Below are positions 3,489 through 63,390 of a stretch of 64,000 nt of DNA, piece after piece. The notes under the pieces are model-generated. The model was not told the DNA's origin, searched no databases, and saw nothing but the letters and a program-made list of their open reading frames with translations. The position numbers and the translations under genes were made by a program. The stretch covers positions 23,374,001 through 23,438,000 of the forward strand of contig NC_043022.1 of assembly GCF_006345805.1 (NCBI RefSeq), given 5' to 3'. The stretch is from Octopus sinensis. Lineage: Eukaryota. Position 1 is the first letter of the stretch. Each line of letters opens with the position of its first letter.

Positions 3489-3563
3489 CAACAGACTTCC
3501 ATTTATTCCCTAGGTATACGGCTATTTTGTTGAGTTGTTTCTGAGTCAGTTTTGTATTAGACT
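3489..3563 (-). CDS. Gene A exon 4: N-terminal part of the death domain
   Basis: tttttgcag|AG...G|gtaagt, 75 nt, phase 1-1. Translates (K)SNTKLTQKQLNKIAVYLGNKWKSV(G) and joins exon 5 in frame. Confidence 0.88.
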
Positions 3564-3858: not shown

Positions 3859-4781
3859 CTATTGAAATGTTTCATATTTACTTTTTTGTTTAGAAATAAC
3901 AGCCAAATCACCATCAAATTTCACACTCTATCTTAACCCTGTGTTAATCATATGGGGTGTTTTGTCATCCCCCAATTTTTTAAATGCTTGCAATCCTTAG
4001 TTGGCAACTTGTTTTATTTTGCTCCTTCCCACTACCTTTCTGACTAAGTGAGGGTGTGTAGCATGTTGTGTGGTGCCACTGTAGCTCAGTTGTTGTGGAA
4101 GGCAGATGTCGCTTTGACATCAACTGGTGTGGAATCTGAGTGAACAGTACTGGCTATATATTAGGGAATACTGAAAAGTTCCTGGCTTTGAGTAAAAAAA
4201 AAAAAATTACTGGAGAATCAGTTTATTTATGATGTTATTCAACATCTTCTCTCAGATTCACACATTTATTGCAACAGTGTGACAGTTTTTCTAAGACCTG
4301 TAAAAGAGCTCAAAATATTCAACCTCCAGCCTGGCCTTATGGAACTTTTCAGCATTGCCTTCATAATCAGCTCACATTGATTTTGCTTTCCATTTCAACT
4401 CATAAGAAATATATTGTGGCTATTTTTGATGACTGAAACTTTTCTCTGTTATTGTATTGGGGTGTTTCACCTACAATTTGCAACATAAGTTTTTGCAATA
4501 AATTTATTATAATTTAAATTTCAACGAATAGTTATATTAGTTATATATTTAGTTGAAATTTTGATTTAATTTATATCGTAAAAGAGATTCCCTGTTATGT
4601 TATTTTTCTAAGCAGCATGACAATATTTTACATAATTGTAACTCTATAAGTATTTTTGTAAACACCCCACGGGACTATCCATTTTTGGAAACTTTAGACA
4701 TTCCACTCTTCAAGGCAATTTCACTGTACTCTTTCCATTACATTTTCCAAATAATGTAAGTGTTGCTGATGCCATGCTCAC

Positions 4782-4883
4782 TTATCATCTGCTCCCAATT
4801 CCAAACATCTCTCTCTTGTCCCCCATCCTTACTTATCATCTTCTCCCAATTCCATAAGTCTCTCTCTTGTCCTCCACCATCAA
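4782..4883 (-). CDS. Gene A exon 3 (51 nt, or 102 nt with the internal duplication)
   Basis: tggtcag|TT acceptor at 4883. Two in-frame donors: A|gtaagg (exon end 4833) and A|gtgagc (exon end 4782). Translates (F)DGGGQERDLWNWEKMI[SKDGGQERDVWNWEQMI]. A further in-frame acceptor lies at 4940 (ccccag|AT). The acceptor choice is uncertain. Confidence 0.6.
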
Positions 4884-6055: not shown

Positions 6056-6433
6056 GGTCCAGTGATAGGGTTTCACACTCACAATTGCCAGATTGTGGGT
6101 TTCATCCCTGGATCAAGTGTTTTGATGTATTCTTGAGCAAAACATTTAATCTTGCTTTGATCTGCAATCAAATGACTGAAACAAGTAAAAGAGTAAAAAG
6201 TGTAAAAAGTGTAAACAAATGGAAACTACTTTTACTTACCGAGATACCTGCTGAATTTCACTTCCTCTTTATCGGTCTCACATTTTTTCTTCTCAGGTTC
6301 TGCGGTTTTCCTATTTGTGACATTAGATTCACCCCCAACTGCAACATTCTTTCCATTTCCAATATTTGCTGGAATAAATGTAAAATTTCTAACATAGCAT
6401 CAAGATCATAAATTCTTGAGAATATAATACATA

Positions 6434-8007: not shown

Positions 8008-8345
8008 AGCCTTGTGGAAACATTTGGGGTACATTTGCAGAGTTTAGCTGGTTGTTTGGGGAATTAATGGAAAGGGATTTTGTTTCAGATTCCTCAATAG
8101 GAAAGTGTGCTGCTTCTTGAGCATAAGAGCTACTAGCTCCTCTAAGAGAAAGCACAATGCAAGTATTCTTGCTGGAATTGTTACAAAGTGGAGGTAGTGC
8201 GTTAGTTTCATTAGATTTGGGTATTTCTCTTATTTTATCATTACCTTCTCCTGTAGGCTTGGGTACTACATTATTGTTCCCTTTTACATCTTCACTACTG
8301 AGTAATATATCAGGGTAACTGCTGGGCATAACAGTTTCATTTTTG
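8008..8345 (-). CDS. Gene A exon 2: low-complexity/disordered N-terminal region
   Basis: tttcattccag|C...T|gtaagc, 338 nt, phase 2-1, open (KNETVMPSS...NVPQMFPQG). Paralogous to 35940-36418 with the same splice phases. Confidence 0.8.
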
Positions 8346-14011: not shown

Positions 14012-14037
14012 CGATGCATTTCTCTGGATTCATCCAT
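14012..14037 (-). CDS. Gene A exon 1 coding part (MDESREMH-R)
   Basis: accATGG Kozak context, 26 coding nt, CG|gttagt phase-2 donor matching the exon 2 acceptor. Lies in a block homologous to 44590-44700. Confidence 0.75.
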
Positions 14038-14794
14038 GGTGGTCCCAACTATTTTCTGTGAATGACGTTCAACAAGAAGCTACAGCACAAGAAATACAAT
14101 ATATAGCTTATATATGTAGCTGTTCACGCAGGTGAGGAAAAAAAAGTGAATGACAGAGTGGGAGTGGGTAGTAGTGGCAGTCACTGATACAATAGACGAT
14201 TTCAATTACATAATTGTATTTAGGTCATCAGTTTCTATCTCTCTCATGCATGCACACAATTATTCATTTACCTGTTTCAGTCAGTTCACTGCAGCCATGC
14301 TGGAGCATTGCCTTTAGTTGAACAAATCAATCCCAGGAGTTATTCTTTGTAAGCCTAGTACTTATTCTATCAGACTCTTTTGCCGAACTGCTAAGTTACA
14401 GGGATGTAAACACACCAACATCTGTTGACAAGCAATGGTGATGGGGACACGGACACACAAATACATACATATGTTCACCATGTTGGACTGCTGAACTCTA
14501 CAAATTTTTATCATTCTCTCCCTGTTTATTTTCTTAAATGGCTGATAATCATCTTCCACGCCGCAACTGATATTGTTTCAGCACATGATCACAGATCAAA
14601 GTACTTTCTACGTAAGTACATTGCCGTAATTTAATTTTCATTTCGTGTCAGAATTTTCGTCGCTCGACCAGTATCACAGATGAAGTTTATCCAGGACAGA
14701 CACTAGCAGACAGACCAGATTTAACTGACAGAATATTTAATATGAATGTTTGGGAACTCTTGCATGATATTTTGGAGAAGAATGTTTTGGGAGA

Positions 14795-15640
14795 GGTTGC
14801 AGAGAACATGTGGGAGTGATTGCAGGGTGCATGTGGGAGAGGTTGCCGGGTACATGTGGGAGAAGTTGTAGGGTACATGTGGAAGAGGTTACAGAATACA
14901 CGTTGAAGAGGTTGCTGGGTACATGTGGGAGAGGTTGTAGGGTACATGTGGAAGAGGTTGTAGGGTACATGTGGGAGAGGTTGCCGGGTACATGTGGGAG
15001 AGGTTGTAGGGTACATGTGGAAGAGGTTGTAGGGTACATGTGGGAGAGGTTGCCGGGTACATGTGGGAGAGGTTGTAGGGTACATGTGGAAGAGGTTGTA
15101 GGGTACATGTGGGAGAGGTTGCCGGGTACATGTGGGAGAAGTTGTAGGGTACATGTGGAAGAGGTTACAGAATACACGTTGAAGAGGTTGTAGGGTACAT
15201 GTGGGAGAGGTTGCCGGGTACATGTGGGAGAGGTTGTAGGGTACATGTGGAAGAGATTACAGAATACATGTGGAAGAGGTTGTAGGGTACATGTGGGAGA
15301 GGTTGCCGGGTACATGTGGGAGAGGTTGCCGGGTACATGTGGGAGAGGTTGTAGGGTACATGTGGGAGAGGTTGCCGGGTACATGTGGGAGAGGTTGTAG
15401 GGTACATGTGGAAGAGATTACAGAATACATGTGGAAGAGGTTGTAGGGTACATGTGGGAGAGGTTGCCGGGTACATGTGGAGAGGTTGCCGGGTACATGT
15501 GGGAGAGGTTGTAGGGTACATGTGGGAGAGGTTGCCGGGTACATGTGGGAGAGGTTGTAGGGTACATGTGGAAGAGATTACAGAATACATGTGGAAGAGG
15601 TTGTAGGGTACATGTGGGAGAGGTTGCAGGGTACATGTGG
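14795..15640 (+). repeat. 23-bp minisatellite (gggtacatgtggRagaggttgYM) with variant units
   Basis: About 36 units. A variant ..ttacagaatacac.. recurs periodically. Confidence 0.9.
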
Positions 15641-16337
15641 ATTATAGAGTTTCAAAAGCATGTGCTACTCCATTGTCATATGTTGTTCGTATTAAAAAAA
15701 GATCCAGAAGATTATGATAAATTCGTTTATGCAGAACTTCCAATCCACAAACACAGCCAATTCTGTTTCGACATGTCACCAACAACATGCTAGATGGTTT
15801 ATGTGGGAGAGATAAACCCAATGCAACATGTATGGTTGATGGGAAATGTTAGGAACGTTTCCCTAAAGACTTTCAGGAAAATACATTACACAGTTATAAT
15901 GGCTATCCACTTTACCGATGTCGAAATAATGGTTTTTACATTTACAAAGTCGAATATTGAATTAGATAATCGTTCAGTAGTACCATATTCCTCACTTCTT
16001 TTTAGTCAAAAAAGGAGGTCATTTTAATGTAGAGATATGTGCATCTGTAAAATCAGATAAATATACTAGCAAATATATTGATAAAGGTCATGATTGGGTG
16101 ACAGTCAGTATCAGTGGACAAACCAATGCACAACAAACACACAAAGATGAAACTGAAAATTATATCAATGGTCGCTATGTATCTTCATCAGAAGCAGTCT
16201 GGAAGATTTTAGGGTTCAAATGACATGGTTCATATCCTGCAATCAAACAGCTTACAGTTCATTTACCCCAACAGCAATACATTTACTTTAATGACGATGA
16301 TGATATTGAACATGTTATCTGCACACATGACATGGAT

Positions 16338-16980
16338 GTGAGTTAACTGGGAATCACACACTGAATGGTTGTGAGTTAACCGGGAATCACACACTGAATG
16401 GTTGTGAGTTAACTGGGAATCACACACTGAATGGTTGTGAGTTAACTGGGAATCACACACTGAATGGTTGTGAGTTAACTGGGAATCACACACTGAATGG
16501 TTGTGAGTTAACTGGGAATCACACACTGAATGGTTGTGAGTTAACTGGGAATCACACACTGAATGGTTGTGAGTTAACAGGGAATCACACACTGAATGGT
16601 TGTGAGTTAACTGGGAATCACACACTGAATGGTTGTGAGTTAACTGGGAATCACACACTGAATGGTTGTGAGTTAACTGGGAATCACACACTGAATGGTT
16701 GTGAGTTAACTGGGAATCACACACTGAATGGTTGTGAGTTAACTGGGAATCACACACTGAATGGTTGTGAGTTAACAGGGAATCACACACTGAATAGTTG
16801 TGAATTAACCGGGAATCACACGCTGAATGGTTGTGAGTTAACTGGAAATCACACACTGAATGGTTGTGAGTTAACCGGGAATCACACACTGAATGGTTGT
16901 GAGTTAACCGGGAATCACACACTGAATGGTTGTGAGTTAACCGGGAATCACACACTGAATGGTTGTGAGTTTACTGGGAA
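16338..16980 (+). repeat. 33-bp minisatellite (gtgagttaactgggaatcacacactgaatggtt), about 19 copies
   Basis: Head-to-tail units with no unique spacers. Confidence 0.92.
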
Positions 16981-19299
16981 TTACCAGCTAAATCATTTGC
17001 ATGTACATTACTTTAGACTGATTTCCCTGAATTTTACTTATGGAATAATAGTGAGAAAATGTGGCATCTCAGAAAAAATAATACACACTCAGTTGGGGGC
17101 ATCTACTTTGTTTCACTCAAGGAACAAGAGCAATTCTGAGAGCTTTACTATATCATATTCCCTGAGCTACATCATTTGAGGATATGAGGACTATTAATGG
17201 CGTAGTTTGCCATAGTTACAAAGAGGCTGCAATGAAACTGGGTTTAGCACATGATGACCATGAATACTATTGCGCTGTGGATTTTGTAAATATTTCAGCT
17301 ATTCTGTATAAAATGCCAAAACTTTTCTGCTAAATTCTGAATTAATACATTCCATATTTTTTATTTTTATTTTTCATTTCTTTTACTTGTTTCAGTCATT
17401 TGACTGTGGCCATGCTGGAGCACCGCATTTTAGTTGATCAACTAGACCCCGGGACTTATTTTTTGTAAGCCCAGTACTTATTCTATACGCACACACATAT
17501 ATATATATATATACGACAGGCTTCTTTCAGTTTCCATCTACCAAATCCACTCACAAGGCTTTGGTCGGCCCGAGGCTATAGAAGACACTTGCCCAAGGTG
17601 CCATGCAGTGGGACTGAACCTGGAACCATGTGGTTGGTAAGCAAGCTACTTACCACGCAGCCACTCCTGCGCCTATGTATACTTATGTGCATCTGTAACA
17701 CAAATTATATGATACAATGTAAAATATGCTATCTTAAAGATAGTGTGTTTGCACTACTATATATATATATATCTTATGTAAAATCCATTGTCTGTCTGTG
17801 TGTGTGTGACTTCTCGGATCTCGGGCATCCTCCATCCGATTGCGCTCAAATTTGAAATGTAGATACCGACGGTATCAGGGCATGTATAAGTCTTGAAAAA
17901 ATTGATTCCAGGTGAGAATGCGATTGATAAAGCCGTTTTTGTCCTGCTTTTCTTCCGTCAACTAGTACATAACTGCACCTTCCGTTTTTTGTTGTTTTTG
18001 TACTGCTTAAAGGCACATTTTTTTCCTGCCAAGCTTACTGTTTAAACCATGTTTGTGTTCTCCTAGTCAACAGCCTTATCATTACTGGTACTTTAAACTC
18101 TTCGGTTGCATATTTGTGTGAATAAAATCGTTTTTCTTTGGAATAGAAAAAGAGTCTATTTTTGTTTCTTCTTTTGCTGGTGTCTCAAATTTAGGTTAAA
18201 TCAGTGTTTCTCAAAGGGGGTGGGGCTATGGGATGGTCGAACAAGTTGTTTTGAGAAAATTTGCTTTAAATGTTTGACAACTCAGCACTATCCATTGGCG
18301 GGGTGGGGTGGGGGCCTTTTGCTCATATATATATATCGTTGTATATATATATACATATATATACAGCCACTGAACCTCATATCCAGCAACCTTGTGACCA
18401 GAGATGGTCCAGAATTCTGGATTTTCCAGATTTCTGGACACAGGCTAAATATATACCAAAAATATAAAAGGTTGATATTTACTTTAATACTCGGCCACCA
18501 AAAAATTAAAAAAAACAAAGTGGGAATGGCACTCGTCATTGCTGGTGACCTGTATATGGCACCTCTGAATTGTGATTGTGATCGTTGCTGGTGTCTGTAA
18601 ATAGCATCTGTGGTGGTGGCACATAAAAGTACCCATTAAACTCCTGGAGTGGTTAGCATTAAGAAGGGCATCTGGCTTTATAAGCCATGCCAAATCGAAC
18701 TGGAACCTCGTGCAGCTCTCCAGCATATCAACCCCAGTCAAACTGTCTAACCTGTGCCAGCATGGAGAGTGGATGTTGAATGATGTTGATGATATATCTA
18801 TGTATATATATACATGTATATAAATATATACACACATATATATATACATGTATATATATACATACATATACATATATCTATATATATATACATACCTACA
18901 TATATATATATGTGGATGTATGTGTGTGTGTTTATATGTGTGTGTGTTTGTGTGTATGTATTTATATAATATAGACTTCTACTATAACATAGGGCCAACC
19001 AAATCCTTGTGAGTAGATTTGGTAGATGGAAACTGAAAGAAGACCTTTATATGTATGTTTATGCTTATATATATCATCATCATCATCGCTTAACGTCCAT
19101 TTTCCATGCTAGTATGGGTTGGATGGTTTGACTGAAGACTGGCAAGCCGGGAGACTGCACCAAGCTCCACTCTATTCTGGCAAGGTTTCTACAGTTGAAT
19201 ACCCTTCCTAACATCAACCACTCCAAGAGTGTAGAGGATGCCTTTTACATGCCATTGGCACAGGTGCTAGCCAGGAGGCACTGGCATCTGTCACGGCAA

Positions 19300-22894: not shown

Positions 22895-23097
22895 TCACTC
22901 CTCTAATGGTAAAAATTGAATTGAATCATAACATCCAGCCTCAAAGAGAGCATTAGCTAAATTGCCACTTGTACATGTGTCCGGCTTGGAAATCTGTAAC
23001 CATCTGTTTAACATTTGAAAACTTTGTTCTTCAACATTATTTTGGTTGTTTGCTTCTATGTTTTCCAGCTCAGCGTTTTTAATTTCTAGATCCCGAC
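22895..23097 (-). CDS. Gene B exon 5 (last coding exon): C-terminal part of a death domain
   Basis: ttttattttcag|GT, 203 nt. Translates (G)RDLEIKNAELENIEANNQNNVEEQSFQMLNRWLQISKPDTCTSGNLANALFEAGCYDSIQFLPLEE* with TGA at 22895-22897. Confidence 0.88.
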
Positions 23098-26684: not shown

Positions 26685-26759
26685 CAACACGCTTCCATTT
26701 ATTCCCTAAGTATATGGATATTTTGTTGAGGTGTTTCTCAGTCAGTATTGTATTAGACT
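26685..26759 (-). CDS. Gene B exon 4: N-terminal part of the death domain
   Basis: tttttgcag|AG...G|gtaagt, 75 nt. Translates (K)SNTILTEKHLNKISIYLGNKWKRV(G). Confidence 0.88.
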
Positions 26760-26961
26760 CTGCAAAAATATTTCCATGATTCTTAAGAATTTATATTGAA
26801 ATGTTTCATATTTACTTTTTTGTTTAGAAATAACAGTCAAATCGCCATCAAATTTCACACTCTATCTTAAATGCTGGACATTCCACTCTCCATGACAATT
26901 TCACTGTACTCTTTCCATTGCATTTTCCAAATAATGTAAGTGTTGCTGATGCCATGCTCAC

Positions 26962-27012
26962 TTATCATCTGCTCCCAATTCCATACATCTCTCTCTTGTC
27001 CCCCATCCTCAA
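26962..27012 (-). CDS. Gene B exon 3 (51 nt)
   Basis: tggtcag|TT...A|gtgagc, phase 1-1. Translates (F)EDGGQERDVWNWEQMI(K). The upstream acceptor seen in gene A is mutated here (cag->tgg) and the extension contains a stop, so only the 51-nt form is open in both copies. Confidence 0.6.
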
Positions 27013-27344: not shown

Positions 27345-30150
27345 ACCATTTTTTCTCACCACATCATTCCATGTCTCCCTGGGTCTACTCCTTCCATATG
27401 TTCCTCCACATTTAGAGCTCAGCACTTCTTTATGCAGCTATCCTAATCCATAGGCATCACATGACCAAATCAGCACAGTCTTCTCTCTTGCACACAACAT
27501 ATGATGCCTCTTATACCCAGTTTTCCCCTTAAATCATTTACACTCTGTTATGCATATACTACTACTTCTAATGATCCACCCAAACATTTGAGGGAGTCTA
27601 TTGTCTGCATATTTTTAGTGCTTATTGTACCTGCACATTTGCCACACACAAAGACTATATTCTTAGTTAACCTTCCTTTGACACTGCTGCACCTCTTATG
27701 TGTTCAAAGTTTGCATGAGGAGTTTCTACCTACGCTCTTCTTACATACCAAGCAGGACCATCTCCTAGAAGGGATTTGTGATTTATCTGTTTCCCTACTT
27801 ACTAGGACTTTTGGTTTTTGCTAAATTAACCCTAAGGCTCTTAGATTCTAGATCTTGTTTCTAGATCCGAAATTGCTTCACTAGGTCAGTCAGTGATTCA
27901 GCTATAAGAACAAGGTCATCAGCATAGAGAAGCTCCCAAAGACAACCAATCTTGAATTCCTCTGTTAAGGCCTGGAGGACTAAGATAAACAGGAGGGGGC
28001 TGGGAACTGAGCCTTGGTGGACTCTCACCTATACACTGAATTCATTGCCAACCTTCACCTTACTGGCAGCATTCCTGTACATGGCTTGTTACTAAACACT
28101 CATTCACTATTAGCTTTCACATTGACCACCAGATAAGGGAGCAGGGCACCCTGTCAAAGGCTTTCTTCATGTTGACAAAAGCCAGGTACAGAGGTTTATT
28201 TTAAGCCAAATATTTCTCCTGCAGTTGTCTAACCAGGATTATGGCATCAGTCATGCTCCTGCCTGGCACAAATCTGAACCGCATCTCATCTACACTATCT
28301 CTGTTCCTAATTAATTGAGCTATGACTCTTTCTATGACTTTCATCACATGGTCCAGCAATTTGATGTCTCTGTAATTATCACTTTTGTCTTTGTAGCAGT
28401 TGACTATAATGCTGCTACACCAATCATTGGGTATGACTCCCTCATGGACAATCTGATTAAATATACTAGTGACTAAGCTATATCCTACTCGAGATATTTT
28501 AAGCATCTCAGCAGTGATTCCTGATGGGCCAGGGACTTTTCCTCTCTTCATGTCTTTAATTGCTTTATCTATCAAGTTACTATCGATTCAGATAGCTGGT
28601 CCCTCAGTAGGGCCAACATCTGGCAGACTCTCCTCCCATTAGTTCTCCACATTTAACAGCCTTTCATAATGGCATTTCCAAGCCATTTTCTTAGCAGAAT
28701 CATTAAATGCAAGTAAACTATCATCCATGCAGACACATTTCTCTCCTATGACATCACAATTTTCTCTCACACACTGTCTTGCAATCTGAAACACTTCAAG
28801 TCTCTGGTCCTCATGTAGCAGAACATTGGCAAACTTCTTTTCTGCTTTTTCCCTGGCTAAGTACACCTATCTCATAACTTTCCTTCTGACTATCTGATAT
28901 AGTTTCCTGATACCATCACACTTCCAGGCTTGTTTCTTTTCTTCTCTAATGGCCCTTTCAACTATACTGTTCCATCACCATGTCACCACAGATCAAGAAG
29001 GGACTTAGCAGATTTAAACAGCAGCCTTTAACAGGTTGTCTTGTAGGAACCTCCAGTTGTTTTCCACATTATATGTTGCTATATCTTCCTCTTTTCCAGC
29101 AAATCCTTCAAGTAACACATCTCTAAATCTCTGTCCATTCAGATGATCCTTAAGCTTCTAAACCTTTCTTTTCCATACAGGTTGTCATCTGGGCAGCCAT
29201 TTATCTCTGATCCTGAAGTATTTAACAACTAACTTATGTTGAGTGGGGTGCATTCTTCACCTGGGAAAGTTTTGGCATTTATAAGTAGCCATCTTCCCCA
29301 TTTTCTGGCAAGAATGTAGTCAACCTGACTAGTGTACCCTCTAGATTGGTAGGTGAACAGGTGACTGGGAGGTCTCCTGAAATTAGTATTGTAGATCATA
29401 AGGTCATTTGAATCACAGAACTCCAGCAGCCTGGCTCCCTCCTCATTACAGGAACCAAATCTGTTGCCACCATGCATGGCATGGAAGCTACCAAGATGTT
29501 GTCCAACATGCCCATTGAAGTTGCCAGCTACAAAGAGAAGGTCCCTGACATTCATCAATGAGGTGGTCTGCAAAAGGGTGTCATAAAATCGGTCTTTCTG
29601 TTCATCAGGTAGTCTCAGCTGAGGGGAATAGCCCAAGCTAATGGTTGCTGCTCCACATTGCAACACCAGTCTAAGCCTAAGTATTCTATCACACACTCTG
29701 ACTACCTCGATTACCTTATCAATCCATTTTAAAAAATAAGTTGGGGTTTTTTCAAAATTAACCCTAAGGCCCTTAGATTCCAGATCTTGTTTCTAGACCT
29801 GATATTGCTTCACTAGGTCAGGTAGTGATTCAACTATAAGAACAAGGTGATCAGTGTACAGAAGCTCCCAAGGACAACCCCCAACCCTATCACTGTTTCC
29901 TACCCAGAAGATTTTATACCTATGGTCTTTGCCTATGAGAAACCTAGCAGAACCTTCTCTGCACCTTACTTCTCAGATGCAACACACTCTACATTCCTCT
30001 GTTCAAGCATCTCAACAATCTCCCCAAACTTACCTTTCAACCTATCAATGTGCCCCATTAAATGTGTGTGGCAAATCTGAGGGTGTGGAAGGTGTGGGCC
30101 AGGGAGACACAGGGATGGGGGATAGCATTTTGCATCTAGAAAGCAAGCTT
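27345..30150 (-). mobile_element. Decayed, rearranged RTE-clade LINE (endonuclease and RT fragments)
   Basis: ISLGYSPQ..LFVAGNFNGHVG..YTSQVDYIL (APE endonuclease); GKVPGPSGITAEMLK..NYRDIKLLDHVMK..FRFVPGRSMTDAI (RT). Stops and frameshifts. 27850-27910 and 29760-29850 are duplicated pieces. Confidence 0.85.
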
Positions 30151-31336: not shown

Positions 31337-31380
<44 letters not shown>

Positions 31381-31393
<13 letters not shown>

Positions 31394-32448
31394 ATTTATG
31401 TGTTTGTGTTTGTCTCCCCAACATCACTTGACAACCGATGGTGGTGTGTTTGCGTCCCTGTAACTTAGCGGTTCGGCAAAAGAGACTGATAGAATAAGTA
31501 CTAGGCCTACAAAGAATAAGTCCTGGGGTCAATTTGCTCGACTAAAGGTGGTGCTCCAGCATGGCCACAGTCAAATGACTGAAACAAGTAAAAGAGTAAA
31601 GAGGTTTAAAAAGGAAATGAGTGCTGGGGGTCGAATAGTTCGACTAAAATCCCTCAAGGCAGTGCCCCGGCATTGCAACAGTCTAATAACTGAAACAAAT
31701 AAAAGATTAATATGAAATCAACAAAGAGAAACTGCGTTTACTTACTGAAATATTTGCTGAATTTCTCCCTATGATTCACGCATTTTATCCTATCTTCTGA
31801 AGAGTATACATTTGTGACATTAGCGTTACCAATGAATACATTGCTCATTCCAATATTAATATTTGCTAGAATAAATGTATAAAATTCTAACTTAGCATTA
31901 GAGCATAAATTTTTGAGAATATAATATATACATAGGCATGGCTGTGTATTAAGAAGTTTGCTTCTCAACCACATAGTCCCAAGTTCAATCCCAGTGCAAG
32001 GTACTTTGGACAAGACTCTCCTAATATAGCCCCAGGTCAACCAAAATCTTTTCAGTAGATTTGATAGATAAAATCTGAAAGAAGCCCGTTTGTGTGCATG
32101 TGTATGTATGGCCCAGTGGTTAGAGCATCAAGTTCACAATCATGAGGTAATGACTTCAATTCCTGAATCGGGCTCTGTGTTGTTTTCTTGAGCAAAGCAT
32201 TTTATTTCGCATTGCTCCAGTTCACTCAGCTGTAGAAATGAGTTGTGACATCACTGGTGCCAAGCTGTATTAGTCATTACCTTTCCCTTAGACAACATCA
32301 GTGGTGCGGAGAGGGGGGGGGGCTGGTATGCATGGGTGACAGCTGGTTTTCCACAAAAAAACTTGACCAGACTTGTGCCTCAGAGGGGAACCTAGGTGCA
32401 ATCCCATGGTCATTCATGACTGAAGGAGGTCATTACCCTTTACTCTTA

Positions 32449-32494
<46 letters not shown>

Positions 32495-33545
32495 ATTTAT
32501 GTGTTGTGTTTGTCTCCCCAACATCACTTGACAACGATGGTGGTGTGTTTGCGTCCCTGTAACTTAGCGGTTCGGCAAAAGAGACTGATAGAATAAGTAC
32601 TAGGCCTACAAAGAATAAGTCCTGGGGTCAATTGCTCGACTAAAGGTGGTGCTCCAGCATGGCCACAGTCAAATGACTGAAACAAGTAAAAGAGTAAAGA
32701 GGTTTAAAAAGGAAATGAGTGCTGGGGGTCGAATAGTTCGACTAAAATCCCTCAAGGCAGTGCCCCGGCATTGCAACAGTCTAATAACTGAAACAAATAA
32801 AAGATTAATATGAAATCAACAAAGAGAAACTGCGTTTATTACTGAAATATTTGCTGAATTTCTCCCTATGATTCACGCATTTTATCCTATCTTCTGAAGA
32901 GTATACATTTGTGACATTAGCGTTACCAATGAATACATTGCTCATTCCAATATTAATATTTGCTAGAATAAATGTATAAAATTCTAACTTAGCATTAGAG
33001 CATAAATTTTTGAGAATAATATATACATAGCATCATGCTGTGTATTAAGAAGTTTGCTTCTCAACCACATAGTCCCAAGTTCAATCCCAGTGCAAGGTAC
33101 TTTGGACAAGACTCTCCTAATATAGCCCCAGGTCAACCAAAATCTTTTCAGTAGATTTGATAGATAAAATCTGAAAGAAGCCCGTTTGTGTGCATGTGTA
33201 TGTATGGCCCAGTGGTTAGAGCATCAAGTTCACAATCATGAGGTAATGACTTCAATTCCTGAATCGGGCTCTGTGTTGTTTTTTGAGCAAAGCATTTTAT
33301 TTCGCATTGCTCCAGTTCACTCAGCTGTAGAAATGAGTTGTGACATCACTGGTGCCAAGCTGTATTAGTCATTACCTTTCCCTTAGACAACATCAGTGGT
33401 GCGGAGAGGGGGGGGGCTGGTATGCATGGGTGACAGCTGGTTTTCCACAAAAAAACTTGACCAGACTTGTGCCTCAGAGGGGAACCTAGGTGCAATCCCA
33501 TGGTCATTCATGACTGAAGGAGGTCATTACCCTTTACTCTTTATA
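31381..33545 (+). repeat. About 1.09-kb direct tandem duplication
   Basis: About 31381-32455 and 32483-33545 are near-identical; the differences are mostly 1-bp indels. Confidence 0.9.
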
Positions 33546-33549
33546 TAAT

Positions 33550-33585
<36 letters not shown>

Positions 33586-33599
33586 AAGTATGGGGGTTT

Positions 33600-34890
33600 A
33601 GTTCACAGGTGATCTAAATGATTAAGTACAAACACCCTGAAGAGCTACAGCATTATGCTGATAAAAATGATATGAAAACATGTTATTCAGGACTTTGAAT
33701 GGTATGCGAGCCACAGAGTAGAGGCGCAACAAAACTCATAGGTCTTGGTGGCCAAACGATATTCCAGGAAAACCTGGAGATCCTTGATAGATTTGCCAGT
33801 CACTTTGACAGCCTACTTAATATCCCAAGTATCAATGGACTATGACACTCTCAAGAAGGTTACGCAACAGCTAATCATCCAATCCTTAGATGACAAACCT
33901 GTTTACAATCAATTCAATGACGTAATCAAACAACTGAACGAAAGTAAATACCCACTGAAATCTGGAAGCATGGAGGTGTAGAGATTATTAAAAGCCTGTA
34001 TAGCACTGTGCTCCAGATCTGGAAGACGGAAACGGTTCCACAAGACTGGAAAGACACAGGCATCATTCTTGTCTTCAAAACAGGTTGTAAAGTGAACTCT
34101 GGAAACTACTGAGGAATATCTCTTCTATCAATAGCTGGGAAGATCTTGGCTCATATTCTATTAAACAGACTAAATGAGTATATCTGTCTTACCTGAGACT
34201 CAGTGTGGCTTCCATTGCAGAAGCACTGTGGATATGATCTTCTGTCTATGCAAAATTCAGGAAAAATGCATTGAGCTGAATATGCCTATGTATGTAGTTT
34301 TCATAGATGTCACAATGGCTTTTGACACAGTATCAGTCCTACACGAAGGAATGCAAGCATTTATAGTACAAAATAGTAATACCTCAAGTGAGGTTGCAGT
34401 GATAAATGAAGTTAGTCAGGGGTGCATACTTGCTCCAGCACTGTTCTCCCTCTATCTCACAGCAGTGTTGGAAGTTGCCTTTAAGGAAGTTGGAGTGGGG
34501 CTTACATCTAGATGTGGCATGATGTTGATCTGTTCAAGGCTGCACAATATAAAGCAAAGACATGCATTATAAAGGCCCTATTGCAAAAGATGCTGATGAT
34601 AGTGCACCAGTTGCCTACAGTGCTGAAGATATGCAGAATCTGGTAGGTAACTTTGCTAGAGCTGCACAAAAATTCAGCTTAAAGATTAACATTAGAAAAA
34701 CCAAATGCCTTTACCAACCTGTGGAGAACCTACATGTGCCTGTAACAGAAGAAAACATCACTATTAGATATGAAAGGCTGGCCCAATGCAAAGCATTCAA
34801 ATACCTAGGCAGTACCATCTCAGATAATGCATGACTGGACCAGGAAATCACATACAGAATGAGCAGAGCTAGTGCTTCATTTGGCAGACT
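33600..34890 (+). mobile_element. RTE (BovB-type) LINE RT fragment
   Basis: ..GISLLSIAGKILAHILLNRL..LPETQCGF.CRSTVDMIF..KIQEKC..FID.TMAFDTV..QGCILAPALF..FKYLGSTIS. Contains stops. Confidence 0.85.
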
Positions 34891-35939: not shown

Positions 35940-36418
35940 AGCATTGTGAAAACATGTTTAGAGCTTTTGCTCCTTCTGAATGAGGATCATTATAAGAGGA
36001 GTCTGGCTGGTTGTGAAATAGATCATCTTTATGGCATCTTGGGTCAAATTCTTTTCTGGGATCCTCTCTGGGAAGGAGTGTTGCTTGCATATTATAGCTA
36101 CGAGTTCTTTTAGGGACCAACATGGCAGGAGTATTCTTGCTAGGATAATCACAAGGTCGAGGTACTGCATCAGTTTTACTGTCGCTATCTTCATTAGATT
36201 TGGGTATTGCCCTTATTTTATTGTGGCTTTCTTTTGTAGGCTTGGGTATTGAATCGTCATCATTTCTGTCATTTTCATTAATTATGGGCACTGCTTTAGT
36301 TTCTGGAGTTTCACTAAGACTAGGTAATGTATCAGAGTTACTGATGGACGTTTCAAAGCATACAGGCTCTGTATTGGTTTCAGAATTGTTTAATGGTACA
36401 GCATCAGTTTCATCTTCT
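35940..36418 (-). CDS. Gene B exon 2: disordered region with DETD|AVPL, ETK|AVPI and SKTD|AVPR motifs
   Basis: ttttattccag|A...T|gtatgc, 479 nt, phase 2-1, fully open. Confidence 0.82.
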
Positions 36419-36568: not shown

Positions 36569-36668
36569 NNNNNNNNNNNNNNNNNNNNNNNNNNNNNNNN
36601 NNNNNNNNNNNNNNNNNNNNNNNNNNNNNNNNNNNNNNNNNNNNNNNNNNNNNNNNNNNNNNNNNNNN
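36569..36668. other. Assembly gap (100 N) in gene B intron 1
   Basis: Run of n; the true size is unknown. Confidence 1.
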
Positions 36669-44621: not shown

Positions 44622-44647
44622 CTATGTAGTTCACTGGATCCGTCCAT
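44622..44647 (-). CDS. Gene B exon 1 coding part (MDGSSELH-R)
   Basis: gccATGG Kozak context, 26 coding nt, AG|gtcagt phase-2 donor. Same length and phase as gene A exon 1. Confidence 0.75.
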
Positions 44648-50806: not shown

Positions 50807-52240
50807 ATGGAATTCGACTTGGCGTCGAAGAATGACTTCCCCGCGATGGGAACAAGTGAATTAAAGGAAACGGAAGTAACCAAACAGTCTTTTTCGGCCG
50901 CGGTAGGCGGAACCATGATGGACGTTGAATTCAAGATCGAACAACTGTTCGAATTCAGGAACTTGGTAAAAATGGAAGGAAACGAAGTCAAACTTGTACC
51001 GCCGCAGGCAAAGGTACAAGAAATAAAGGAGAAAACAGTCATATATAAAGTGTATAGCTACAAAGAAAAGAAAATTATGGACGTTAGAAACGAATTGGTC
51101 GAAAAGTGCTTGTCCCCGGTGTGGGACAAAAGCCGCCATGTCGTCCGAGGTGCGCGTAGCGCTACTGTTGAGGCACATTTTGACTCGGCTGAGATAGCAA
51201 GAGAGGTATCATCATTGACCCTGAAAAATGATGAGATCATGCTGCTACCCTCGTACATGGGAAAAAGAACAGCGAAACTGCTGGTAGAGGACATACCGAG
51301 AGGATACGATATAATGTGGGTAGCAGCAGCGGTCCTGCACAATATAGAGCGGGAAATTTCGATTCTGCAGATGAGAAGGAAAGAGGAGGTACGCTGGAAG
51401 GGACAGACGCTGGAGCTCCTCGTTCAGGCGGAAAACAAGATATTAGAGAACCTGCCCGATAGGATATTCAACGAAGATGGAACATCCATGAGAGTATCAG
51501 TAGAGGGACACAGACCTAGATGTTTTAAATGTGGAGAGAAGGGTCACGTCCGCTCGAACTGCATAAAAAAGAAGAAAACCAACGAAGCCCCTCCTCAAAG
51601 TGCTTCAAACACTGAAGGGGAGAAGGCAGAAAAGGATAACAAGACGACGACAAGCATAGAAACAGAAACGGATTGTACCGAACACATGGACTACACACAG
51701 GTAACACACAAAAGAAAAAAAGACAACACCCTGGAGTCCCCTCCCCAAACAAGGAAAAAACCAGCAAGCACCGCAGACATACACACGAAACAAATCCCCC
51801 AGCCCTACCCCCATGGCACTGTTTTCATTGGGAAACAGTTCGCCAAGCCCCTCCCCATAAAACAAGATGTGAAAAAGTCTTTAAAAAAAAATGATAAGAT
51901 CATTGCTTTTGATGAAAAAAATGAAAGGGTATATAAATACTATAAATTTTCAAAATTTAAATTATATAGCAAGGCCACAGACATAAAAGCAACCACTCGC
52001 TTCGCGAAAATAAAGGAAGACGAGTGGAAGGAGGAAGTTCTTCAAGAACATCTAAAGAATAGACTGATCAGAGATGTGACAAAAGAAGTTCTGGAGGGTA
52101 AACTCGTTATAACCCCGGCAACCACACCTACCCAGAGCCCGGTGGCAACGCCGGTTAAGAGCCCTGCAGCTACGACCACAAGGGAGGAAGAAGGGGAAGC
52201 GGGCAGACTTAAACTGTCATGCTCCCTTTCTCAACCGTAA
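50807..52240 (+). CDS. LINE ORF1 (477 aa), gag-like with a CCHC zinc knuckle
   Basis: CFKCGEKGHVRSNC, uninterrupted frame. Confidence 0.9.
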   Translation: MEFDLASKNDFPAMGTSELKETEVTKQSFSAAVGGTMMDVEFKIEQLFEFRNLVKMEGNEVKLVPPQAKVQEIKEKTVIYKVYSYKEKKIMDVRNELVEKCLSPVWDKSRHVVRGARSATVEAHFDSAEIAREVSSLTLKNDEIMLLPSYMGKRTAKLLVEDIPRGYDIMWVAAAVLHNIEREISILQMRRKEEVRWKGQTLELLVQAENKILENLPDRIFNEDGTSMRVSVEGHRPRCFKCGEKGHVRSNCIKKKKTNEAPPQSASNTEGEKAEKDNKTTTSIETETDCTEHMDYTQVTHKRKKDNTLESPPQTRKKPASTADIHTKQIPQPYPHGTVFIGKQFAKPLPIKQDVKKSLKKNDKIIAFDEKNERVYKYYKFSKFKLYSKATDIKATTRFAKIKEDEWKEEVLQEHLKNRLIRDVTKEVLEGKLVITPATTPTQSPVATPVKSPAATTTREEEGEAGRLKLSCSLSQP

Positions 52241-52266
52241 GTTCATTTATTTTTCTCTCACCGACA

Positions 52267-55200
52267 ATGGCTAAGCTGGGTTGTGTGAATGTACGTGGAA
52301 TGGGGTCGAAACGGAAACAAATTTGTTTCCTGAACGACCTCACGACACATGGAGTAGACATAGCTATTGCAACCGAGTCCAAGATGAGCGAGGCCCAAGC
52401 GTTCTCGCCTCTTCTAAATGGGTTCGAGAAATTTATTTCTCCTAGCCGAGGAGGAGGCAGAGGCGTGGCAGTCCTTATCAGGAAGAGCTTGGACTTGCAG
52501 GTAAGTACTGTCTTTCTGGACCCAGAAGGCAGGCTGGTTGTTCTGGATGTGACCCACGTAAGTAAACACTCCTTCAGGTTGGTAGCTGTCTACACTCCGA
52601 ACGAGGGTAAACAGACGGGTTTTTTTCGGAACCTGGAGCCCTTTTTAGCGACGTCGAAAACGGTAATCTTAGTAGGGGACTTTAACACTGTCCTTGAAGC
52701 GCGGGTCGACAGTGTTGGCTCAACCAATAGGAAGGGGAACCCTAGCCTCAAGGGTCTACTAGAGAGCTTTGATCTAGTGGACCGTTATCGACTGGATGAG
52801 CCGAGCGTTCCACAGTGGACGTGGAGTAACAACGACGGCTCACACAGATCGTATCTAGATAGGATATTTATTAAGAAAAGAGATAAGGATACGTTTAGTT
52901 GTCCACAATTTCACATTGTGCCTTACACGGATCACAAATTTGTGACGTGTAGGATGCAATTAGACAAGTGTCATAGACAGGGATCCGGGTACTGGAAGCT
53001 GAACAAGGCTATTTTGAATTGTGAAGACTTCCGTACCCGGATTAAGGTGTTAGTACAGAGGGCATTGTGTGGCACCATCATTAACAATAGATGGTGGCAC
53101 TCCCTCAAAAGAGCCATTCGTTCAGAGTCCATCAGATTTAGCAATCAGCTAAGGATAGATAGGTCTAGGATAGAGGACGATTTAGTTAAGAATCTAAACG
53201 AGGCAATGGAAGCTGGCTCTGCATCCGGAGTGTTGGCGGCAAGGACGGTATTGTACCGTCACCTTAACTCCAAACACGAAGGTTGCAGAGTCAGAGCTAA
53301 GCTACGCGCTGGGAAACGAGAAGGTATTAACGTTGCTGGATGGGCCCGTCGAGTGGAGAGTCAGAGAGGTAACAAAGCCTCAATCCAATCTTTAACTGAC
53401 GAACAGGGACAAAAGATCTATGGACAGGAGGAGATGCAAAAGTTTCTTCACCAGCATTTCGCCCGCGTGTTCGGGGGTGGTGTGGCGCCGGAGCGGGGGA
53501 GGACCTTAAAGGACTTCCTGGCCGGCGGGCCACGGCTCTCGGGGCGTGAGATGGAGTGCTGTGAAGAAGCGATCACTCCCGCGGAGATAGAGGGGATACT
53601 GGCCGGATGCGCCGGGGAGAAGTCGCTGGGGTTGGATGGTCTGCCCTACGAGTTTTACCAAAGTATGCCGGACTTGTTCGGGGGAATATTGGCAGGCGTC
53701 TACACGAACTGGCAGCAGAATGGGAGGATTCCCAGTTCTGTAAGCCGGGGAGTGGTGACGCTAATCCAGAAAGACCCGAGCAAGGGGGATAACATTAGTA
53801 ACTACAGGCCCATAACTCTACTTAATGTAGAGTTAAAGATTCTGGCCAAGGTGTTGGCAAAAAGGTTGACGGTTGTCGTGGAGAAACTTGTAGGGAGAGC
53901 ACAGACATGTGCAATTCCAGGCAGGTCGATCCAGGACAACCTTCACCTTATACGCTACACCTTAGATAGGGTGGGTAAATTAACCGGCAAGGGCGGGGTA
54001 ATGGTCCATTTAGACCAAAGTAAAGCGTTCGATAGGGTAGACCATGAGTACCTGGCGACGGTCCTCGAAGCGGCTGGACTGGGCCCTGAATTTCGCGGGT
54101 GGATCTCCGCTATGTATAGCGGCATCAAGTCCACCGTCCAGATAAACGGTTACCTAACGGAACCGTTTTCGATCGAATGTTCAGTTCGTCAAGGGTGCCC
54201 CTTGTCACCACTTTTGTACGTATTGGCTCTTGAGCCATTGCTGCGAAGGTTGGAGAGACTGGGAAGTAACTCGGATGAGATCGGAGGTGGGAGGACGGTT
54301 ACTGCTTATGCGGATGACGTCACCCTCATCGTGTCCAATGAGGCCCAGCTACCTTGTGTGGAAGAGGCTATCAGAGGATACGAGGCGGTGGCAGGAGCAA
54401 AGGTTAACAAGGACAAGTCGGTTGGCTTGCGCCTCGGCACCTGGAGGAGCAAGTCGATATCGTCCAGTGTCCCACGACACTGGACGGATGGCCCTGTTAA
54501 GTTGCTAGGAGTTTGGTTTGGGCCAGACTCCCAAACGGAGAGGAACTGGAGTGAAGTGACGAGCAAGGTGGAGGCCATAGTACGGACCTGGTCCGGAAGG
54601 TTTCTGTCCTTGAAAGGAAGGGCGGAGGTGGTACGGATGTTCATTGCATCTGTAATCACTTACCGCCTGACCGTTGTCCCTTGCCCCGACTCATGGCTTA
54701 GCAAGTTGGAGCGAATCCTTTTCCGCTTTTTGTGGAAGGGAGGAAAGCCACTTGTGAGGCGCTCCGTTTGCTGCCAGGAACCGTCGAAGGGTGGGTTAGG
54801 AATGCCTTGGTTGATGATGCACAGACATGCGTTGAGGCTGAAGCATCTCTGGCACCACCTGGAGGGTGATAAGGTGTGGAGTCCGCTGGCAGGGGGATTT
54901 TTCCCGAGTCCGGCCTCCTTAGTGAATTTTAAACCCGGTCTCATCAGAAGATGGAAACTGACTTCATGGCAAAAGGAGTGCCGACAGGCACTCACGCTGA
55001 TCCACAAGGCGGGCAAGGCCGGCTGCGGAAATACCACCTCGGTATTTTATAGAAGGCTGGTAGAGGTAAAAAACGACGACGTCCTAGGAGGGGCTCTGGG
55101 GTTTGACGAAGACCAGCTTATCAACCTGTTTAAAAAGACTTTCAGGACGGGGTATTTGGATAATTTCCAAAGATCCCTGGCCTGGCAGTGCTATAGGAAT

Positions 55201-55656
55201 GCTTTACCTGTTCGCGAGAAGTTATCGCGGCACGGAATTCCAGTGCCACCGACGTGTCCAAGGTGCGAGTTGGACGATGAAACCGTCCAGCACGCTTTTG
55301 TACACTGTCGGAAGTTGTCCGACTTGATAAGTTACACAGAACACGTGTTATCGCATCTGGGACGAGTACAGCTGTCGGCTGAGTCTATGATTAAGATGAT
55401 ACCGCCAACTGGACTCTCGAAGGAAGGTGAGGCATGTTTTCACTGCACGGTTGCAGTAGTAAAAGAGTGTATGTGGCGAACAAGAATGGAAGGAGTCGCG
55501 ATAGGATCCTTTGTCTCGGGCCCCGGCTTGCTCACTTACTTCAGATATCATCTGAAGAGCAAAATGGGGCTGGAAAAGAGGATCTTACCACGGGGTGTGT
55601 ATGAGAAAAGATGGAAGGAAGTGGAAAAAAAGGTGGGCGTCAGAAACCCAGCTTAA
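52267..55656 (+). CDS. LINE ORF2 (1129 aa from ATG 52267; the frame is open from 52219): APE endonuclease, reverse transcriptase, zf-RVT
   Basis: NVRG, VGDFN, YLDRIF, TDH (APE); KSLGLDGLP, NYRPITLL, DQSKAFDRV, QGCPLSP, YADD (RT); CPRC..ETVQHAFVHC. Confidence 0.96.
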   Translation: MAKLGCVNVRGMGSKRKQICFLNDLTTHGVDIAIATESKMSEAQAFSPLLNGFEKFISPSRGGGRGVAVLIRKSLDLQVSTVFLDPEGRLVVLDVTHVSKHSFRLVAVYTPNEGKQTGFFRNLEPFLATSKTVILVGDFNTVLEARVDSVGSTNRKGNPSLKGLLESFDLVDRYRLDEPSVPQWTWSNNDGSHRSYLDRIFIKKRDKDTFSCPQFHIVPYTDHKFVTCRMQLDKCHRQGSGYWKLNKAILNCEDFRTRIKVLVQRALCGTIINNRWWHSLKRAIRSESIRFSNQLRIDRSRIEDDLVKNLNEAMEAGSASGVLAARTVLYRHLNSKHEGCRVRAKLRAGKREGINVAGWARRVESQRGNKASIQSLTDEQGQKIYGQEEMQKFLHQHFARVFGGGVAPERGRTLKDFLAGGPRLSGREMECCEEAITPAEIEGILAGCAGEKSLGLDGLPYEFYQSMPDLFGGILAGVYTNWQQNGRIPSSVSRGVVTLIQKDPSKGDNISNYRPITLLNVELKILAKVLAKRLTVVVEKLVGRAQTCAIPGRSIQDNLHLIRYTLDRVGKLTGKGGVMVHLDQSKAFDRVDHEYLATVLEAAGLGPEFRGWISAMYSGIKSTVQINGYLTEPFSIECSVRQGCPLSPLLYVLALEPLLRRLERLGSNSDEIGGGRTVTAYADDVTLIVSNEAQLPCVEEAIRGYEAVAGAKVNKDKSVGLRLGTWRSKSISSSVPRHWTDGPVKLLGVWFGPDSQTERNWSEVTSKVEAIVRTWSGRFLSLKGRAEVVRMFIASVITYRLTVVPCPDSWLSKLERILFRFLWKGGKPLVRRSVCCQEPSKGGLGMPWLMMHRHALRLKHLWHHLEGDKVWSPLAGGFFPSPASLVNFKPGLIRRWKLTSWQKECRQALTLIHKAGKAGCGNTTSVFYRRLVEVKNDDVLGGALGFDEDQLINLFKKTFRTGYLDNFQRSLAWQCYRNALPVREKLSRHGIPVPPTCPRCELDDETVQHAFVHCRKLSDLISYTEHVLSHLGRVQLSAESMIKMIPPTGLSKEGEACFHCTVAVVKECMWRTRMEGVAIGSFVSGPGLLTYFRYHLKSKMGLEKRILPRGVYEKRWKEVEKKVGVRNPA

Positions 55657-62543: not shown

Positions 62544-63390
62544 TATTTATATATAAAAGAAAGGTTGTGTGTCTGTCTACTCCGATTTAGATTCCTAACT
62601 ACTCCCACATTTTGCGATGCCGTTTAACCAAAACCGGGTATCTTATAGTCGTGATTCATATCGAGCCCTTCTGGGTATTAGCACGCGTCTACGATGAGTC
62701 TACGATTTTACAAATAATTTACCATCATTTTTTTCCATTTTAATGCATATTTCTTTAAATAAAGGGAAGTAACTTTCAAACTTCACACCAATATGCATGC
62801 TCATATGCGACGTAATATCACATCAGCAGCATTTCCTCACACCCTCCTTGCACTTGGCGAAGGCAAAATACCAGGGGATGAAAATGGTAATATTGCCATC
62901 GATTCCATTTGTACTATTGTTAAGACGCCTTCTGATCTCAGAGATGCAGTGTTCCCAGATCTACAAGCTAATTATCAGAATATGGATTGGATTGGCAAAA
63001 AGGCTATACTGGCCCCGAGGAATAAAACTGTTCACCATATTAATGATGAAATGCTAAAACTCATTCCTGGGGAAGTCTATGTATATCAGTCTATCGATAC
63101 AACTCCTGACCCAGAGGACGTCATCAACTATCCAATAGAGGTACTCAATTCCTTTGAGCACCCCGGACTACCACCACACTTTCTCAAACTTAAAGTTGGT
63201 GCCCCTATAATGCTCATCAGAAATTTGGTTCCCCCAAAACAATGCAATGGCACACGTTTGATCGTTAAGTCCTTATCTCCCACCGTAAACTTATATCAAT
63301 ATTTGCCTGAATAATCATCATAATTCAGTGCAATCATTAACAGTACTTTCAAGCAATTCAGCCCCGAGCAACGCCGGGCAATTCTGCTAG
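62544..63390 (+). mobile_element. Internally deleted Helitron carrying a PIF1-helicase fragment
   Basis: 5' end like 11296-11691. ORF 62793-63314 reads ..AILAPRN..YPIEVLNS..PGLPPH.LKLKVGAPIMLIRNL..CNGTRL. 3' cccgagcaacgccggg hairpin and CTAG at 63387-63390. Confidence 0.88.

Follow-up and report, generated by a model that had tools for sequence, protein, structure and literature searches.

In a 64,000-nt stretch of Octopus sinensis chromosome CM016884.1 (NC_043022.1, positions 23,374,001 to 23,438,000; hereafter the window), two neighbouring tandem paralogs, gene A (LOC115224809) and gene B (LOC115224810), lie on the minus strand. NCBI labels for these genes are limited to 'uncharacterized' or 'RIPK1(-like)', the latter derived solely from the death domain. 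We find that the N-terminal region of B carries, at the level of sequence, the combination that marks the adaptor IMD in insects, namely a caspase site followed directly by an Ala-headed IAP-binding motif (IBM). The combination occurs twice in B, as DETD/AVPL and SKTD/AVPR (a slash marks a predicted cleavage site or a splice junction), and is absent from A. Taking the sequence evidence as a whole, we favour, at a probability of about 0.6, an explanation in which B works as IMD does and A is an octopod duplicate without this switch, which would act either as a competitive damper or as an adaptor with a different output.

An earlier prediction made from the DNA letters alone (below, the original prediction) had placed three Ala-Val-Pro motifs in B. 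A six-frame pattern search together with direct reading of the sequence recovers all three at the predicted positions, which are given here, as throughout, in window coordinates:

36391 to 36414, minus strand: site 1, DETD/AVPL (DAVP at 36394-36405; the Asp is D14, or D25 in the NCBI model)
36283 to 36303, minus strand: middle motif, ETK-AVPI, with no Asp at P1 (AVPI at 36283-36294)
36157 to 36180, minus strand: site 2, SKTD/AVPR (DAVP at 36160-36171; the Asp is D92, or D103 in the NCBI model)

All three are encoded within a single exon, 35940-36418, which is preceded by a ttccag acceptor and reads REDETDAVPLNNSE...ETKAVPIINE...DSIPKPTKE...IRAIPKSNE...SKTDAVPRPC. Two related motifs that were missing from the original prediction lie on the same strand, DDD-SIPK (DSIP at 36244-36255) and KIR-AIPK (36199-36210), and both are kept in O. 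bimaculoides. The B ortholog of that species also retains the three principal motifs, as DEID/AVPL, TK-AVPI and KTD/AVPQ. Motif residues are kept there at 24 of 25 positions, compared with 82% identity across the exon, a difference that is marginal by itself (binomial p ~0.05).

A more distant relative, P0011, carries the same layout. This 299-residue protein comes from transcriptome assemblies (Logan runs SRR27666076 and SRR27666058) on contigs that hold no other gene; we treat it as closest to octopods. It is ~35% identical to B across the RHIM-like core and death domain and has the C-terminus LPLDE in common with it. P0011 contains three tandem repeats of ~50 residues, each of which opens with D/A-x-P (KID/AMPV, KTD/ANPI and KPD/AMPI). 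In a three-way alignment these openings fall on DETD/AVPL, ETK-AVPI and KTD/AVPR of B, respectively, with D14, A15 and P17, A51, P53 and I54, and D92, A93 and P95 as invariant columns, so that the three-module layout predates Octopus. At the middle module, P1 is Asp in P0011 and Lys in both Octopus species.

How do these sites compare with the switch of insect IMD? Insect IMDs conserve LKSDA, LTTDA, LETDA or LEKDA, which comprise the site cut by Dredd and the opening residue of the IBM (PMC6626034), and cleavage exposes the IBM for the BIR2/3 domains of DIAP2 (PMC6626034; PMC9496462). We built a profile from four octopus proteins and searched it against 1.84 billion representative sequences (E up to 0.001), finding 539 proteins. 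Short matches that reach upstream of the death domain include a Schistocerca gregaria 'IMD-like protein' (P0091) with LTTD/AVPI at residue 17, an Anabrus simplex 'protein immune deficiency' (P0072) with LTTD/SVPE, scarab beetle homologs (the P0126 cluster) with LTTD/ARPQ, and an unnamed protein (P0151) with LETD/AVPT. When a cephalopod profile (B, its O. bimaculoides ortholog and P0011) was aligned by hhalign with a profile of six insect-type sequences, the two matched over 208 columns (probability 99.3%, E 7.5e-21). The alignment starts with SDSKTDAVPRP over ATLTTDAVPIP and further along takes in the RHIM-like core and death domain. By position and by sequence, then, site 2 at least is the counterpart of the insect switch; site 1 has the same near-N-terminal position as the insect switch.

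The resemblance to arthropod IMD (Drosophila Imd, Tenebrio TmIMD, the Schistocerca IMD-like protein) extends beyond this site. Like B, these proteins are kinase-less and 200-300 residues long, with an N-terminal caspase site plus IBM of the form x-x-[TK]-D/A-x-P and a C-terminal death domain of RIPK1 type. They also have a RHIM-like core that lacks the canonical Gln (cRHIM), of which B has a putative equivalent. There are also differences. Where IMD has a single module, B has a series of A-[VI]-P motifs, of which two follow Asp, one Lys and one Arg, in addition to SIPK, and P4 is Asp or Ser in B, not Leu as in insects. Moreover, B adjoins a motif-less paralog; we know of no IBM-less IMD paralog in Drosophila.

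Might the motifs simply be chance or compositional features of a low-complexity region rich in Ser, Asp, Pro and Glu? The N-terminal region of B is indeed compositionally biased, and alignments inside it are ambiguous: a 13-sequence MAFFT alignment placed insect LTTD/AVP on DDSIPKP of B, a placement that we judged unreliable in disordered regions, relying on the cephalopod-only alignment and hhalign instead. Yet composition does not account for the motifs. The region has 168 residues with just 8 Ala and 5 Val, and still contains three AVP, a number not reached in any of 200,000 composition-preserving shuffles; two DAVP arose at a frequency of 5e-6. The AVP codons differ between the copies (GCT GTA CCA, GCA GTG CCC and GCA GTA CCT), indicating that we are not looking at a recent DNA repeat but at copies maintained by selection at the peptide level. 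If chance were responsible, we would also not expect the motifs to be kept across species, their three positions to coincide with those of so diverged a relative as P0011, or the motif site to match that of insect IMD. Jointly, the shuffles, the hhalign result and the P0011 alignment effectively refute a chance origin, which we regard as very improbable.

Signs of a related switch are found in mussels. The Mytilus edulis and M. coruscus homologs (P0162-P0169) are kinase-less, ~228 residues long, and combine a canonical IQIG RHIM with a death domain. Conserved among them are NDTE/AVVAEAM, with N-D-T-E/A-V-V-A at residues 12-17, and a second motif, [SA]D/SLPY, near residue 50. Insects, Mytilus, Octopus and P0011 all have an acidic residue followed by A-V-[PV] within residues 12-25, and to judge from its sequence the Mytilus protein resembles an IMD-type adaptor in which P1 is Glu. 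It differs from octopus B in that residue and in having Val at the third IBM position. The nemertean Tubulanus 'RIPK1-like' protein P0172 has the same kinase-less architecture of RHIM plus death domain but shows no such N-terminal motif. Death-domain identity to the octopus proteins is ~25% for the Mytilus and nemertean proteins.

Turning to the rest of the protein, Death is the only Pfam domain found in either paralog (B, 3.5e-10; A, 6.6e-06; both past the cut-off), and the closest matches among solved structures in the Protein Data Bank (PDB) are RIPK1 death domains (6e-10), far above ankyrin, FADD and others. Pfam finds no kinase domain in A or B, and the intervals between exons hold no kinase-like open reading frame (ORF) in either gene. 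Upstream of the death domain, SNINIGMSNVFIG of B (SNINIGMSNVF-IG) aligns by BLASTP with SGIQIGDSNYMEIG, the RHIM core in a fragment of a vertebrate RIPK1, and with NNVMVGSSNVMNV of a protein of the annelid Owenia that combines kinase, RHIM and death domain, the latter alignment extending into the death domain. The core of B lacks the canonical Gln, as does the 'cryptic RHIM' of Drosophila Imd and PGRP-LC (PMC9496462). AlphaFold confidence for the NCBI protein of B (predicted local distance difference test, pLDDT) is below 50 over residues 1-209 and reaches 70-77 in the death-domain helices; the low values are consistent with a predicted disordered region bearing short linear motifs. In short, A and B are kinase-less proteins that begin with a predicted disordered region and end in a RIPK1-type death domain, with a putative RHIM-like motif between the two, which is the layout of insect IMD.

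In A, the switch is gone. Exon 2 of A reads KNETVMPS...NVVPKP...REIPKS...TNALPP, with no Asp before Ala, Ser or Gly, so the original prediction was correct in its reading of KNETVMPS and NETNALPP (exon 8008-8345) and in stating that A lacks the caspase and IBM motifs of B. Its description of these stretches as equivalent positions needs to be modified, however. The starts of the two second exons are ~90% identical across intron and acceptor, and alignment of the DNA reveals that A is missing a 51-nt block that holds D/AVPL (flanked in B by a GAAAC direct repeat), a 39-nt block that holds K-AVPI, and 15 nt immediately before site 2. Only site 2 has been altered by point changes (TDAVPR to TNALPP); the other two motifs were lost as blocks rather than by substitution of residues. 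The RHIM tetrad has also changed, to I-G-N-G in A against I-N-I-G in B (NIGNG for NINIG), with a one-residue deletion.

Despite these losses, all exons of A are open, with splice sites and death domain intact, and the gene is retained in three Octopus species, orthologs being 84% identical in O. vulgaris and ~64% in O. bimaculoides. In a neighbour-joining tree, A and B of Octopus group together with 100% bootstrap support, Argonauta falling outside, and the A and B clades receive 95% and 99%, respectively. This topology places the duplication that gave rise to A inside the octopod lineage, within the Octopus clade. Insects, Mytilus, P0011 and B all have the switch, albeit with Glu at P1 in Mytilus, so A most likely lost it after duplication.

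We can now sketch how the pair might operate. The death domain of B would recruit a FADD/caspase-8-type complex, and the caspase would cut after Asp in x-T-D/A-V-P, at DETD/AVPL (D14) and/or SKTD/AVPR (D92). The new Ala-Val-Pro N-terminus would dock in the type II BIR groove of an IAP E3 ligase, which would ubiquitinate the adaptor and so feed TAK1/IKK/NF-kB signalling, and the RHIM-like core would drive or support oligomerisation. The N-terminal region of B would, in effect, be an array of cleavage/IBM modules, and cutting at both Asp sites would release an 80-residue fragment with an AVPL N-terminus that could titrate or compete for IAPs. A would have kept the death domain while losing the modules (two deletions plus point changes) and the hydrophobic RHIM tetrad. 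It would probably still join death-domain complexes, but could probably neither recruit an IAP in this way nor form RHIM fibrils, leaving it as a competitive damper or as an adaptor with a different output. Several of the partners required by such a scheme are on record: IAPs with type II BIRs have been reported in Octopus, and FADD, Dredd/caspase-8 and Relish orthologs in molluscs (PMC8917759; PMC9835746).

Release of an IBM-headed peptide by a double cut would be reminiscent of Smac/DIABLO and of Reaper, Hid and Grim. AVPI of B matches the mature N-terminus of Smac exactly, and AVPL, AVPR and AIPK fit the general IBM pattern, A-[VTI]-[PA]-x. Nonetheless, all four tetrapeptides lie internally in B, whereas the IBM of those proteins is exposed when a mitochondrial presequence or the initiator Met is removed and not by a caspase cut inside an adaptor. 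Those proteins also lack a RHIM or death domain, and the Octopus AVPI follows Lys.

We consider the role of B as a caspase-activated IAP recruiter to be well supported by these comparisons of sequence. The original prediction is borne out in part: the IMD architecture and the alignment of D/AVP with the insect site speak for it, but with Lys and no Asp before AVPI in Octopus the middle motif is not, as written, a caspase-exposed IBM. A more ambitious version of the model, in which cephalopods and probably molluscs at large have a true IMD-type adaptor and octopods an array of latent IBMs that is unmasked stepwise, with A as a dominant-negative, seems to us quite unlikely. Here, caspases would open the D/A sites and a Lys/Arg-specific protease (e.g. 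a paracaspase) perhaps the K/A and R/A sites, allowing graded or multivalent IAP recruitment and release of Smac-like IBM peptides. A, with no IBMs and a dead RHIM, would cap death-domain assemblies, making A and B a genomically linked activator/damper pair for NF-kB.

A number of observations weigh against IMD-like function, or at least against some part of it. The octopus death domain is 33-36% identical to that of an annelid kinase-bearing RIPK-like protein and 22-29% identical to that of insect IMD, and the neighbour-joining tree (~120 death-domain columns), which resolves shallow nodes only, puts Octopus no nearer to insect IMD than to the annelid protein. The N-terminal motif could be convergent with that of IMD, and we regard the claim that B works like IMD as much better supported than the claim that it is an ortholog of imd. 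Within the array, AVPI is preceded by Lys and AIPK by Arg, and neither is a caspase site. Lys at P3, as in SKTD, is unfavourable for mammalian caspases, although lepidopteran IMD has LKSD, and hence Lys at P3, at its caspase site (PMC6626034). Conservation of the motifs is borne out by O. bimaculoides, with all three motifs, and by P0011, with D/A-x-P three times, but not by the N-terminally partial Argonauta homolog, which has no D/A at the position of site 2. The Pfam RHIM model matches neither the full proteins nor isolated stretches of 47-49 residues, the sole output being a sub-threshold TIG match that we disregarded, and a phmmer search of the PDB with the 35-residue RHIM stretch alone found no match. 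Finally, A retains a [VIL]-P core at positions that have lost the Ala, hinting that part of the pattern serves some other purpose.

Several of these points are what one would expect if B were instead a kinase-less derivative of RIPK1 that operates in RHIM/death-domain cell-death complexes and not as an NF-kB adaptor of IMD type. The A-[VI]-P array would then be a proline-based docking motif, with the Asp-Ala junctions either incidental or inactivating, as when caspase-8 cuts RIPK1. The death domain is, after all, nearest to a spiralian protein with kinase, RHIM and death domain and to RIPK1 structures; NCBI names the orthologs 'RIPK1'; and the [VI]-P core is found not only in Asp-Ala contexts but also behind Lys, Arg and Ser, and survives in A without Ala. 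RIPK1 itself, whether from vertebrates or in the form of the kinase, RHIM and death-domain protein of Owenia fusiformis, aligns with B end to end from RHIM core to death domain. However, the octopus proteins have no kinase domain according to Pfam and begin with a disordered motif array, and the Asp sites of B are followed by an IBM-type Ala-Val-Pro; the caspase-8 site of RIPK1 is not known to be. If the junctions were incidental, we would not expect the profile-profile alignment to insect IMD to take in the D/AVP site itself, the acidic residue plus A-V-[PV] to recur near the N-terminus from insects to Mytilus, or P1 to be Asp in all three modules of P0011. Descent from RIPK1 without an IMD-like role strikes us as improbable.

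The fate of A is harder to call, and its role as decoy or damper, plausible on present sequence evidence, is one of several readings and the weakest step of the explanation. The degenerate RHIM core, which was not part of the original prediction, is an additional argument that A may be a decoy. A competing view, which we think has a substantial if smaller chance of being correct, is that A, still an adaptor, has been sub- or neo-functionalised and uses its death domain to signal along a different route, or else that it is a copy drifting towards loss of function. In keeping with this view, A evolves faster (~64% identity between the O. sinensis and O. bimaculoides orthologs over the death domain, as opposed to 79% for B), its IBM modules and RHIM tetrad are lost, and an NCBI isoform skips most of exon 2. 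Against it stand five open exons and canonical splice sites, a death domain above the Pfam threshold and orthologs kept in three Octopus species. A different route might be sought in the FPIEESE stretch of A, a putative match to a P-x-E-x-x-acidic pattern of TRAF6 type. Overall, we continue to prefer a B that works as IMD does, alongside an A that has lost the switch.

The gene models behind these comparisons were obtained by mapping NCBI proteins onto the window with tblastn and reading the splice junctions. A protein-collection search with the spliced model of B returned its NCBI protein (P0001, 311 aa, O. sinensis) and the O. bimaculoides protein (P0002, named 'RIPK1 isoform X2' by NCBI), and a profile search additionally yielded the gene A protein P0004 and its O. 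vulgaris ortholog P0003. Each gene has five exons with canonical splice sites and consistent phases, giving 300 residues for B and 257 for A, where the NCBI models have 311 and 205:

44622 to 44647, minus strand: gene B proximal candidate exon 1 (ATG GAC GGA TCC AGT GAA CTA CAT AG; MDGSSELH plus 2 nt; donor AG/gtcagt)
35940 to 36418, minus strand: gene B exon 2, the disordered N-terminal region with every A-[VI]-P motif (99-100% to P0001; acceptor ttccag)
32843 to 32962, minus strand: gene B exon 3, second near-identical copy (1.1-kb tandem duplication; donor GTAATA)
31746 to 31865, minus strand: gene B exon 3, RHIM-like core SNINIGMSNVFIGNANVTNV (donor GTAAGT)
26685 to 26759, minus strand: gene B exon 4, start of the death domain (tblastn with NCBI proteins)
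22895 to 23097, minus strand: gene B exon 5, remainder of the death domain plus stop codon (Pfam Death 3.5e-10)
14012 to 14037, minus strand: gene A exon 1 (MDESREMH plus 2 nt; donor CG/gttagt; used in P0004)
8008 to 8345, minus strand: gene A exon 2, N-terminal region with no Asp-Ala, Asp-Ser or Asp-Gly junction (KNETVMPS, NVVPKP, REIPKS, TNALPP)
6240 to 6368, minus strand: gene A exon 3, degenerate RHIM-like stretch SNIGNGKNVAVGGESNVTN
3489 to 3563, minus strand: gene A exon 4, start of the death domain
1859 to 2064, minus strand: gene A exon 5, remainder of the death domain plus stop codon (Pfam Death 6.6e-06)

Which first exon B uses determines whether the first Asp is D14 (proximal exon) or D25 (NCBI model). 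The splice from exon 1 to exon 2 that had been predicted, and with it D14, is compatible in phase, and the paralog is spliced in the same manner: the NCBI model of A joins the MDESREMH exon 1 to exon 2 (P0004 contains MDESREMHRKNETVMPSS). The NCBI model of B, on the other hand, employs a distal first exon ~1.5 kb past the window end, with a weak GTTTGT donor. The proximal exon 1 of B, although missing from that model, is supported by the gene A paralog, the two first exons having 70% DNA identity over ~190 nt. DETD/AVPL, being encoded in exon 2, is present under both models.

The RHIM-like exon of B lies in a tandem duplication (31347-33571) whose 1.1-kb copies are 98.5% identical and flanked by dinucleotide microsatellites. 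As the exon is 120 nt long, both copies together would remain in frame and yield a protein with two RHIMs; the NCBI model uses one of them. The duplication could be real or an assembly artefact. Two other arrangements were considered and dismissed. Joining exon 2 directly to the death-domain exon yields a stop codon in the resulting phases, and the RHIM exon sits between them; a 96%-identical block (4697-4829 and 26877-27009) fails as an extra exon, with stops in all frames in A and no trace in the NCBI proteins. In P0004, the NCBI isoform of A, an internal donor in the 8247 region (GAAG/gtaatg) causes the last two thirds of exon 2 to be skipped, and the reading frame opens at an ATG that precedes the MDESREMH start. 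A 100-N scaffold gap (36569-36668) falls in intron 1 of B, ~150 bp upstream of exon 2, and touches no coding sequence.

The window matches chromosome CM016884.1 of assembly GCA_006345805.1 without a single mismatch across the 51,106 bases that overlap. As a whole it is AT-rich and full of repeats resembling short interspersed nuclear elements and of microsatellites. Between the proximal exon 1 of B and the distal exon 1 of NCBI lies an apparently intact long interspersed nuclear element (50807-55656, plus strand), with an ORF1 of 477 aa that contains a CCHC zinc knuckle and an ORF2 of 1145 aa with endonuclease, reverse transcriptase and zf-RVT. Reverse-transcriptase fragments are present in the introns of B (34174-34834, plus strand; 28201-29696, minus strand). 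A 173-residue ORF at 62793-63314 (plus strand) has a Pif1 helicase 2B domain (2.5e-15) and is probably a fragment of a Helitron-type transposon. Tandem-repeat arrays between exon 1 of A and the last exon of B (14687-15641, units of ~69-92 nt; 16263-16993, units of 66 nt) produce long spurious ORFs on both strands. Outside the window, O. bimaculoides LOC106882527 (P0022 / P0178) encodes a protein of 1283-1535 residues that resembles adhesion G-protein-coupled receptors and ends in a death domain of the A/B subfamily, preceded by STSQQ repeats; we note it as a candidate membrane partner of the A/B adaptors.

According to a 2023 survey, molluscs and brachiopods had yielded no Imd ortholog; the spiralian imd that it reported, the first of its kind, came from a nemertean and was identified by a death domain alone (PMC9835746). 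Literature searches by LOC identifier found no paper describing LOC115224810 or LOC115224809, and a broad search for IMD-like proteins in bivalves and squid returned irrelevant papers only. What appears to be new here, judging from sequence, is that a further phylum has an IMD-type adaptor, that its switch module is multiplied and that it is linked to a paralog without the switch. An octopus protein with the sequence hallmarks of IMD, including the cleavage/IBM switch, bears on the existence of an IMD pathway outside arthropods. Together with the mussel relative, octopus B would move the caspase-to-IAP switch back to the protostome ancestor, or else constitute a striking case of convergence. 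There are implications for annotation, too: mollusc 'RIPK1' genes have been cited as evidence for necroptosis in molluscs (PMC8917759), and may be misnamed IMD-like adaptors. The A/B pair, finally, amounts to a natural experiment, in which one scaffold occurs with and without the switch, so that what the motif does can be tested directly in a cephalopod.

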